From Podarcis vaucheri (lineage: Eukaryota): DNA of 64,000 nucleotides. Positions 14,863-16,329 of the stretch are shown piece after piece (the stretch's first letter is position 1; the number at the start of each line of letters is the position of its first letter). The stretch is from the NCBI GenBank assembly GCA_965113315.1, contig OZ220375.1; one strand, given 5' to 3'. A program made the position numbers and the translations under genes. Under the pieces are notes generated by a model. That model was not told the origin of the DNA. It saw only the letters and a list, made by a program, of their open reading frames with translations, and searched no databases.

Positions 14863-15598
14863 GCCTGTCTCCAGGCTAAACACACCCAACTCCCTCAACC
14901 ATTTTCCCTAAGGCTTGGCCTCAAGACTCTTGATCATCTTGGTAGGCCTCTGTGCACATTCCAGCCTGTCAATATCCTTCTTAAATTATGGCACCCAGAA
15001 TTGGACACAGTACTCTAGGTGTGGTCTGACCAAGGCAGAACAGAGTGGCGCTGTTACTTCCCTTGATCTGGACATTATACTTCTGTTGATGAAGCCTAGA
15101 ATAGCATTAGCTTTTTTTTTGCTGCTGCATCACACTGTTGTCTGATGTTCAGCTTATGGTCTACTACAGTGGTGTCAAAACTTTTTTCAAAGAGGGCCAG
15201 ATTTGATGAAGTGAAGGGCCGTGAGGGCCGACCAAATTGCTGACCTTTTTTCAGGACTGAAGTTGTTGAGTTTTTTGTTTTTTTAAAGGATTTTACCCCA
15301 GGAAAAAAACAACTGCCACAGGGGCCGGATTAAACCAACCAGCAGGCCAGATTAGGCCCCCCCAAACGGACTTTGGACATGCCTGGTCTAGCTTCATAAA
15401 TCACAGATTTGGCAGCTGAATTTCCAGGAAAAAATTGTCATGTGTTTCAAGAGATATGGGTGCATTCAAACAATGGGCGAGGGGGAAATCTTTGCATGTG
15501 GCAAGTGTCCAATGGGAATGCGTAAGTGTGATGAGTGTTTATGATTATGGGATGGCCATGCCTGCTTTTTCTATGGAAAATAAGCGTCTGCCTCTCAC

Positions 15599-15671
15599 CC
15601 CTGTCGAACTTCTTGCCCTCGGGGTCGATGTCCTTCACATCAAAGATATCCTCAAAGAGGATGCCGGCCAT
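15599..15671 (-). pseudogene. POLR2H: Captured first coding exon of POLR2H (RPB8/RPABC3): [24 protein letters not shown] + phase-1 donor
   Basis: 24 aa match the vertebrate RPB8 N-terminus as I recall it; Kozak gccATGG; donor G|GTGAG; no further POLR2H exons in the window. Confidence 0.93.
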
Positions 15672-15960
15672 GGCAACGCGGGAGGAGCAGCTGCAACTGG
15701 GGGCTCCCGACCTGATATAGCCACGCGCACGCTCGCAGAGAGCATGGAGCGCCGCTTTCCTCCCTTCGCTTCCGGCACGGGCGCCTGGCGATGACGTCAA
15801 CAGTCTGAGGCTCAGGCGGACATGCTGGAACAGGGCAGAGGGGTGGCGGGGAAAGGGTGGCCGCGACTGGAAGGAGGAAGAGGGCGAGAATAGCGGGGAG
15901 GGGAGGCGGGGCATCCCTCAGCTGCGCACGCACACAAGTCTGCTTTGAAGCCCGAAAGAG
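15672..15960 (-). promoter_or_regulatory. Captured CpG-rich POLR2H 5'UTR/promoter
   Basis: ETS site CTTCCGG 15769-15775, full CRE TGACGTCA 15792-15799, GC boxes (GGCGGGG), NRF1-like TGCGCACGCA 15923-15932; CpG-rich amid AT-rich intron. Confidence 0.72.
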
Positions 15961-16329
15961 GGCAAAAAAGACCCCGACCTTTAAACCTGCAATAAAGGGA
16001 GGGGGCGGGGCAGGAGGAATAAATATATATTTGTGTGTGTAGACTCTGGCTTGTAGGCTGCCGCGCATGTGCTGAAAAGGCAGCTTTCTTGTGTCAAAAA
16101 AAAGAAAGCGAGAATAAAAGGTGAAGGCTGGCGGCCAGCGGCGGCTACACGGGCCACACGACGAGGTCTGGCGGGCCGGATTCGGCCCGCGGGCCTTGTG
16201 TTTGACACCCGTGGTCTACTAAGACCCTCTAGATCCTTTTCATATGTACTACAGGCAACCCCAAGTCAAAGTAGTAGGTTGTCATTACTTTCTCCTAATC
16301 AGCCAGGATCTAGAGTAACACAGTTTTTA

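Follow-up and report, generated by a model that had tools for sequence, protein, structure and literature searches.

The 64-kb stretch of lizard DNA that we analysed (hereafter, the window) contains exons of a minus-strand ankyrin-repeat gene, which we take to be inversin (INVS), and one of its introns holds a LINE that is interrupted by a unit of 1,047 bp with terminal inverted repeats (TIRs) and a target site duplication (TSD). Our main reading, to which we assign a probability of about 0.9, is that this unit is a non-autonomous composite of the hAT type, lodged in a CR1-like LINE, and that it carries a genomic-DNA copy of about 700–760 bp from the 5′ end of POLR2H. The features of the locus are the following, in window coordinates.

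887–1279, 11618–11779, 12440–12628, 13033–13296, 13821–13994 and ~30548–30709, minus strand: ankyrin-repeat exons of the host gene
14860–15158, minus strand: C-terminal region of ORF2 of the CR1-like LINE, on the 3′ side of the insertion
15159–15166: left copy of the TSD, GTCTACTA, coding on the minus strand for the VD of the LINE ORF2 motif VLVDxKL
15167–15385, plus strand: MITE1, a complete small non-autonomous hAT-type element of the A type, 219 bp, with the outer left end (L) from 15167
15322–15385, plus strand: inner right end (R′) of MITE1, ending in TTGGACATGCCTG
15386–15393: 8-mer GTCTAGCT, abutting the inner right end; the target matrix ranks it among the top 0.9% of 8-mers in the window
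15386–15598, minus strand: 5′ part of POLR2H intron 1, 213 bp, contiguous with the exon, donor GT at 15598–15597
15599–15671, minus strand: first coding exon of POLR2H, 73 nt (24 codons plus 1 nt, phase 1), ATG at 15671
15672–15960, minus strand: POLR2H 5′UTR and predicted CpG-island promoter, GC 0.66, CpG o/e 0.82
15961–16147, no strand assigned: distal upstream sequence of uncertain origin, which holds a weak candidate for an inner left end (L′)
16148–16213, plus strand: outer right end (R), of the B type, ending in GTTTGACACCCGTG
16214–16221: right copy of the TSD, GTCTACTA, coding for a second VD (VLVD at 16225–16214)
16222–16300, minus strand: degenerate LINE ORF2 on the 5′ side of the insertion, matching residues 263–288 of the LINE relative P0166

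Insertion site and boundaries of the unit

The host intron lies between an exon that ends in ...AAQK|gt and the exon that starts with ag|GGAAAT at 13994, and both boundaries are in phase 0. Within it, the peptide deduced from the left flank of the unit (14989–15129, minus strand) has 3,821 relatives; the long ones contain an RVT_1 domain just upstream of the matched region and read ...EKDLGVLVDxKLxMSQQC...KKANGILG... We name this LINE a CR1 after its LEYCVQFW motif region. Continuity of the LINE was examined by aligning four relatives to each flank separately, which for P0166 gave these blocks:

16298–16230: residues 263–288
16225–16214: residues 290–293 (VLVD)
15164–15114: residues 292–308 (VD...)
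15117–14860: residues 307–393

On the degenerate 5′ side, the comparison with another relative, P0135, pairs STCEKDL with STYEKDL. The VD of the VLVDxKL motif is single in the LINE homologues, and the alignment of both flanks to P0166 therefore indicates that ORF2 is continuous across the element, with only the codons of the TSD (VD) doubled. The original prediction had likewise placed the unit in an otherwise continuous LINE, and these alignments confirm it.

Apart from copies of a SINE, self-BLAST of the element and its flanks against the window detected neither another copy of the element nor one of its immediate LINE flank. These SINE-like copies, 73–91% identical, are located at 14493–14861, 3208–3573, 55414–55726, 35110–35406, 22328–22505 and 24010–24199, and one of them directly adjoins the LINE fragment that received the insertion; ARAGORN called no tRNA in them, and Rfam and tRNA scans of the window yielded no matches.

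The limits of the element, 15167–16213, were established by reading positions 14700–16700 together with a repeat scan, which returned the size, hAT-type outer TIRs, perfect 8-bp TSD and coordinates originally proposed. The element starts with CAGTGGTGTCAAAAC and ends with GTTTGACACCCGTG, and the core of its TIRs is a perfect inverted match of 9 nt (9/9). The two copies of GTCTACTA abut the two ends and are identical at 8/8 positions. The direct repeat is actually 10 bp long, TGGTCTACTA; judging from the comparison with the transposon family described below, the extra TG belongs to the right end and closes it. In the 64-kb window GTCTACTA occurs only four times, and the chance of an 8/8 match at the two positions abutting the ends is ~1.5e-5. 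Short TIRs with a terminal YARNG are a criterion for hAT elements (PMC3014272): the left end, CAGTG, fits this motif, and the right end read inward, CACGG, fits it at 4/5 positions. We also considered a Tc1/mariner element with a TA duplication, because of the published TIR of TcMar-N15_AC, but discarded it since both right ends of the unit are followed by GT, not TA, and the 8-bp repeat is perfect.

The captured 5′ end of POLR2H

The peptide encoded by the captured exon is identical at 24/24 positions to residues 1–24 of RPABC3/RPB8 from solved polymerase structures in the PDB (E 7e-11), so that its identification as the N-terminus of RPB8 stands; the match to the Pfam RNA_pol_Rpb8 model is weak and under its cut-off, as expected for 24 residues. 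The exon ends in the splice donor G|GTGAG (15599|15598–15594). All annotated vertebrate isoforms of POLR2H splice after FDR+G and then diverge, and this is therefore a natural exon boundary. The adjacent part of the intron, 15386–15598, has no similarity to the transposon family. Upstream of the exon, the sequence is rich in CpG, with GC 0.63 and CpG o/e 0.80 over 15597–15960, compared with a CpG o/e of 0.36 for the 64-kb window. We infer a promoter function for 15672–15960, where the motifs include a CRE-like TGACGTCA at 15799–15792 and an ETS-like CCGGAAG at 15775–15769. The layout thus agrees with that originally described from the letters (about 210 bp of intron, a 73-nt exon with its G|GTGAG donor, a 5′UTR and a CpG-rich promoter).

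Downstream POLR2H exons linked to this copy, named in the original prediction as evidence that would speak against it, were searched for by tblastn with 120 RPB8-like proteins, full-length vertebrate ones included. The window matched only at 15576–15671, and the remaining exons (residues 25–150) were found neither downstream nor elsewhere in the 64 kb; 54 weak RPB8 matches clustered at 53557–53655 were attributed to chance (E >= 0.44). The cargo, of ~700–760 bp, was copied from the 5′ end of POLR2H at the DNA level, as first proposed, and is neither a retrocopy nor the gene itself: a retrocopy is excluded because the intron, the donor and the CpG-island promoter are kept and there is no poly-A, and a functional POLR2H gene is excluded because the window holds no other RPB8 exon. 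This copy cannot make RPB8.

A minus-strand ORF of 155 aa at 15447–15914 extends out of the promoter, across the exon and on into intron sequence. It has relatives for the 24 exon residues only, and a gene caller would therefore report a spurious protein here. Likewise, comparison of the read-through ORF (exon plus intron) with 5.8 billion proteins gave matches confined to 24–26 residues of the exon, so that no parent or sibling copy was found.

Transposon family and internal anatomy

Scanning metagenome contigs with a pattern of the right end retrieved 120 loci, from a few JGI data sets, which are pieces of an animal host genome (GC 0.41, with intronless neurochondrin and Tam41 genes). The host animal is apparently an invertebrate, and no human-looking sequence was present among the 120 loci. 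Members of this family have CAGGGGTGTCAAAC as their left TIR and a right end of the form ...GGGCCGGATTTGGCCCGCGGGCC....GTTTGACACCCCTG; the 12 complete copies (ten of ~2.1 kb, plus others of 762 and 842 bp) are flanked by 8-bp TSDs that are perfect or contain one mismatch, and 82 distinct flanks define a target of the form nTYTARAn, in line with the nTnnnnAn type of target that serves as a criterion for hAT elements. Window positions 16172–16213 (42 nt) are 88–90% identical to the right terminus of the family (E 8e-9), and the left end in the window aligns to the left end of the family. These likenesses in sequence support the assignment of the lizard unit to hAT, independently of the single TSD in the window. 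Under the target matrix of the metagenome family, the outer TSD GTCTACTA is in the top 2.7% of window 8-mers, agreeing with the target at positions 2–5 and disagreeing at 6–7. No hAT transposase gene was found in the window or in the 120 metagenome loci, where the 2.1-kb copies contain no long ORF or Pfam match, and the end motif gave 0 matches in viral contigs.

The likeness between the lizard and metagenome termini reflects either deep conservation or transfer of the family between phyla. In the metagenome host, the non-autonomous hAT-like family is abundant and young (e.g. L017:6983–9085, L105 and L003); an identical open frame of 480 aa, with no Pfam match, is also present at L084:3021–4460 and L052:4586–6025. 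Among the published Anolis TIRs, those of hAT-N5_AC and TcMar-N15_AC are similar to the ends in the window; the closest, CASRKGTGTCAAACTCAA, matches the right end at 17/18 positions and is filed as TcMar-N15_AC, with a TA TSD (PMC3014272). A TIR of this kind makes 8-bp TSDs both here and in the metagenome family, and the classification of TcMar-N15_AC may therefore deserve a second look.

The unit does not appear to be a simple element interrupted by foreign DNA. Within it, positions 15322–15359 match positions 25–62 from the right terminus of the metagenome family in the same orientation (E 1.6e-4), with the alignment extending to the terminal bases at 15385, so that a second, inner right end (R′) closes the first 219 bp. 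The 8-mer that follows, GTCTAGCT, runs straight on into POLR2H intron sequence and, to judge from its fit to the target, is probably the site in POLR2H intron 1 at which MITE1 first inserted. We also considered GTCTAGCT as a duplicate of the outer TSD, and rejected this; the two share only GTCTA, an overlap that target preference explains.

The two right ends also differ in type. In the diagnostic block, R′ is 72% identical to subfamily A of the metagenome family vs 36–40% to subfamily B, and the outer R is 32–36% identical to subfamily A vs 68–76% to subfamily B; this assignment rests on ~25 diagnostic columns, because the reference family comes from an unrelated and distant animal host. R and R′ are only 48–54% identical to each other, and the left end L pairs with the inner R′ as an A-type element. 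On these comparisons, the outer right end derives from an element of another subfamily than MITE1, and the unit is a composite of two elements. Their identity of 48–54% also rules out an in-situ duplication of the right end together with the TSD, of the type of maize Ds-l4-483. The picture of a single "Pack" element that was first drawn hence holds for the outer limits, which are hAT-type and marked by TIRs and a TSD, but not for the interior, with its complete 219-bp element and a right end of another subfamily.

A candidate for a degenerate inner left end, GTGTCAAAA at 16091–16099, shows a weak likeness to L (equalled in 11/1000 shuffles, p ~0.01), and the 8-mers that precede it are not target-like. 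The inner ends fit the consensus TIR less well than the outer ends. The CpG o/e of the left arm (15167–15385) is 0.34 vs 1.16 for the right arm (16086–16213), a contrast that would suit long methylation of the left element but not of the right arm. The two arms share an 18-mer with three differences, two of which are changes from CpG to CpA.

Compared with the original prediction, the new elements are that the ends belong to a family making 8-bp TSDs in independent metagenome copies, that the left 219 bp form a small element, complete down to a right end of its own and followed by a target-like 8-mer, and that the outer right end, by its diagnostic positions, comes from a different subfamily, giving a two-element composite. 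The succession of small element, original flank, cargo and foreign right end bears directly on whether the composite arose by macrotransposition or by filling of a gap in situ.

Origin of the composite and possible activity of its cargo

For the origin of the composite we favour, at roughly even odds, macrotransposition from the POLR2H locus. That locus would have contained an old small element of the A type in intron 1 and, upstream of the promoter, the identically oriented right end of a B-type element. With their inner ends degenerate, a hAT transposase would have brought together the two outermost ends, the left one of the A-type element and the right one of the B-type element; everything between these ends would have moved as one macrotransposon, with an 8-bp duplication made upon insertion, so that capture and transposition would have been one event, and repair templated by the sister chromatid would have made the donor locus whole again. 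In favour of this are the TSD at the exact ends of the TIRs, the continuous LINE and the family with 8-bp TSDs, as well as the second right end with its target-like 8-mer, the mismatch of subfamilies, the worse inner ends and the CpG contrast between the arms. Against it, the inner left end is weak (p ~0.01) and no target-like 8-mer precedes L′, an essential gene would lose its promoter and exon 1 upon excision unless the donor were faithfully repaired, and most single-copy animal Pack-TIRs arose without transposition (PMC8277862). This last point also concerns the original claim that the TSD around the composite proves transposition after capture, which is unsafe: the TSD alone does not show that the composite transposed, because the TSD of a resident element filled by gap repair also surrounds the composite (PMC8277862).

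Such an ectopic gap repair in situ is possible, though we hold it to be less probable. A simple resident element with these outer ends and the GTCTACTA duplication would predate the capture; a break in it would have been filled by copying a homologous small element in POLR2H intron 1, with synthesis continuing past the right end of that element through intron, exon and promoter, and then back to the right part of the resident. This is the usual origin of single-copy animal Pack-TIRs, with an orthologous cargo-free transposon found in outgroups in 94% of the testable primate cases (PMC8277862); shared homology of the resident and ectopic elements, as members of one family, would account for a cargo that begins precisely at the right end of an element plus its flank, and the window contains no second copy. 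However, gap repair needs a resident that combines ends of both types, A on the left and B on the right, or else a crossover within the 14-nt TIR; the left arm, unlike the right, has an old, CpG-depleted look, and the return junction shows no clear homology. We regard as doubtful the scheme of the original prediction, whereby a Pack-type element gained the POLR2H fragment at a third locus, by template switching in repair, and later transposed. The TSD and TIRs do bound the whole unit, and frog and alligator have multicopy Pack-hATs that transposition has spread (PMC8277862), but this scheme leaves unexplained the complete inner right end and the target-like 8-mer running into the intron, and the window contains no further copy that would attest repeated transposition. 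Finally, we consider it very improbable that the locus reflects a faulty assembly, a processed retrocopy or the genuine POLR2H gene. The window does contain a run of 148 N, located elsewhere (25184–25331); a chimeric join, however, would not yield an 8-bp duplication at the exact TIR ends within a continuous LINE ORF, the retained intron and promoter, with no poly-A, tell against a retrocopy, and the genuine locus is contradicted by the lack of any other RPB8 exon in 64 kb and by the presence of host exons on both sides.

Capture of gene fragments by such transposons is rare in animals, although already documented, and its scarcity in amniotes had been overstated in the original prediction. 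A survey of animal genomes identified 370 Pack-TIRs, of which 208 were associated with hAT, the commonest superfamily, though none was found in the anoCar2 lizard genome (Tan et al. 2021, PMC8277862). Squamates, in which hATs have been recently active, are under-sampled for such captures. As in animal Pack-hATs, for example the frog hAT-N8_XT with the 5′UTR of CAPSL, our unit encloses host gene sequence within TIR transposon ends that are flanked by a TSD, and many Pack-TIR copies are, as here, intronic and in sense with the host gene (PMC8277862). Pack-TIRs are defined by an insert of 100–5,000 bp of non-TE sequence between two fragments of the same TIR element (PMC8277862). Here, the insert is ~700–760 bp, but the flanks do not appear to be halves of one element: they belong to the same family and to different subfamilies, the left being a complete small element and the right an end of the other subfamily. 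A further contrast is that the cargo comprises an entire CpG-island promoter along with the first coding exon and its donor.

Parallels for this anatomy are found in plants. In the Ac/Ds macrotransposons of maize, of the same superfamily, the outer ends of two linked elements in direct orientation move the intervening DNA and generate an 8-bp TSD (Huang & Dooner 2008, as cited in PMC9910405), which is a precedent in favour of the macrotransposition proposed here (PMC3260210, PMC9910405). Ds-l4-483 (PMC3260210) likewise has a complete element on one side, then foreign DNA that became trapped, then a truncated element; its Ds parts are nevertheless duplicates and its TSD appears three times, in contrast to the dissimilar right ends of the lizard unit, where the inner 8-mer differs from the TSD. 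Both are plant systems, and the composite described here is animal. Among amniotes, Helitrons of vespertilionid bats are DNA transposons carrying a host promoter, 5′UTR, first exon and donor, and can seed chimeric transcripts; unlike our unit, they are rolling-circle elements that have no TIRs or 8-bp TSD, capture by read-through and are highly amplified (PMC4224331). The non-autonomous hAT families of Anolis (Novick et al. 2010, PMC3014272) share with it the 8-bp TSDs, the CAG... termini and a TCTAGA-like target, and hobo_AC shows frequent uptake of extraneous DNA (PMC3014272); the filler of these Anolis elements is mostly old TE fragments, with no gene exon mentioned (PMC3014272), and here it includes a gene exon. 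The locus would constitute a clean animal case, resolved at sequence level, of a cut-and-paste transposon relocating the promoter, first exon and donor of an essential housekeeping gene, in sense orientation, into an intron of another gene.

The captured promoter, exon and donor are in sense with the host gene, 1.6 kb upstream of its acceptor at 13994. There is a small chance, in our estimate, that the captured CpG island has stayed unmethylated and active as a promoter and that sense transcripts are spliced from the POLR2H donor into the next inversin-like exon, an arrangement that natural hAT macrotransposition would have created. The CpG o/e of 0.80 in a background of 0.36, the intact Kozak ATG and donor, and the sense orientation are compatible with this, and, if true, a transposon would have delivered an alternative promoter and first exon to an amniote gene. 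Splicing of the phase 1 POLR2H donor into the phase 0 host exon would be out of frame, with a stop after ~12 codons; the intron phases rule out an in-frame fusion between RPB8 and the host product, and, since the RPB8 ATG is out of frame, any effect would be regulatory or via a downstream start codon. The strongest CpG island of the window is located at 44400–46000 (GC up to 0.77, CpG o/e ~1.0), upstream of the ankyrin exons on the minus strand, and probably represents the promoter of the host gene itself.
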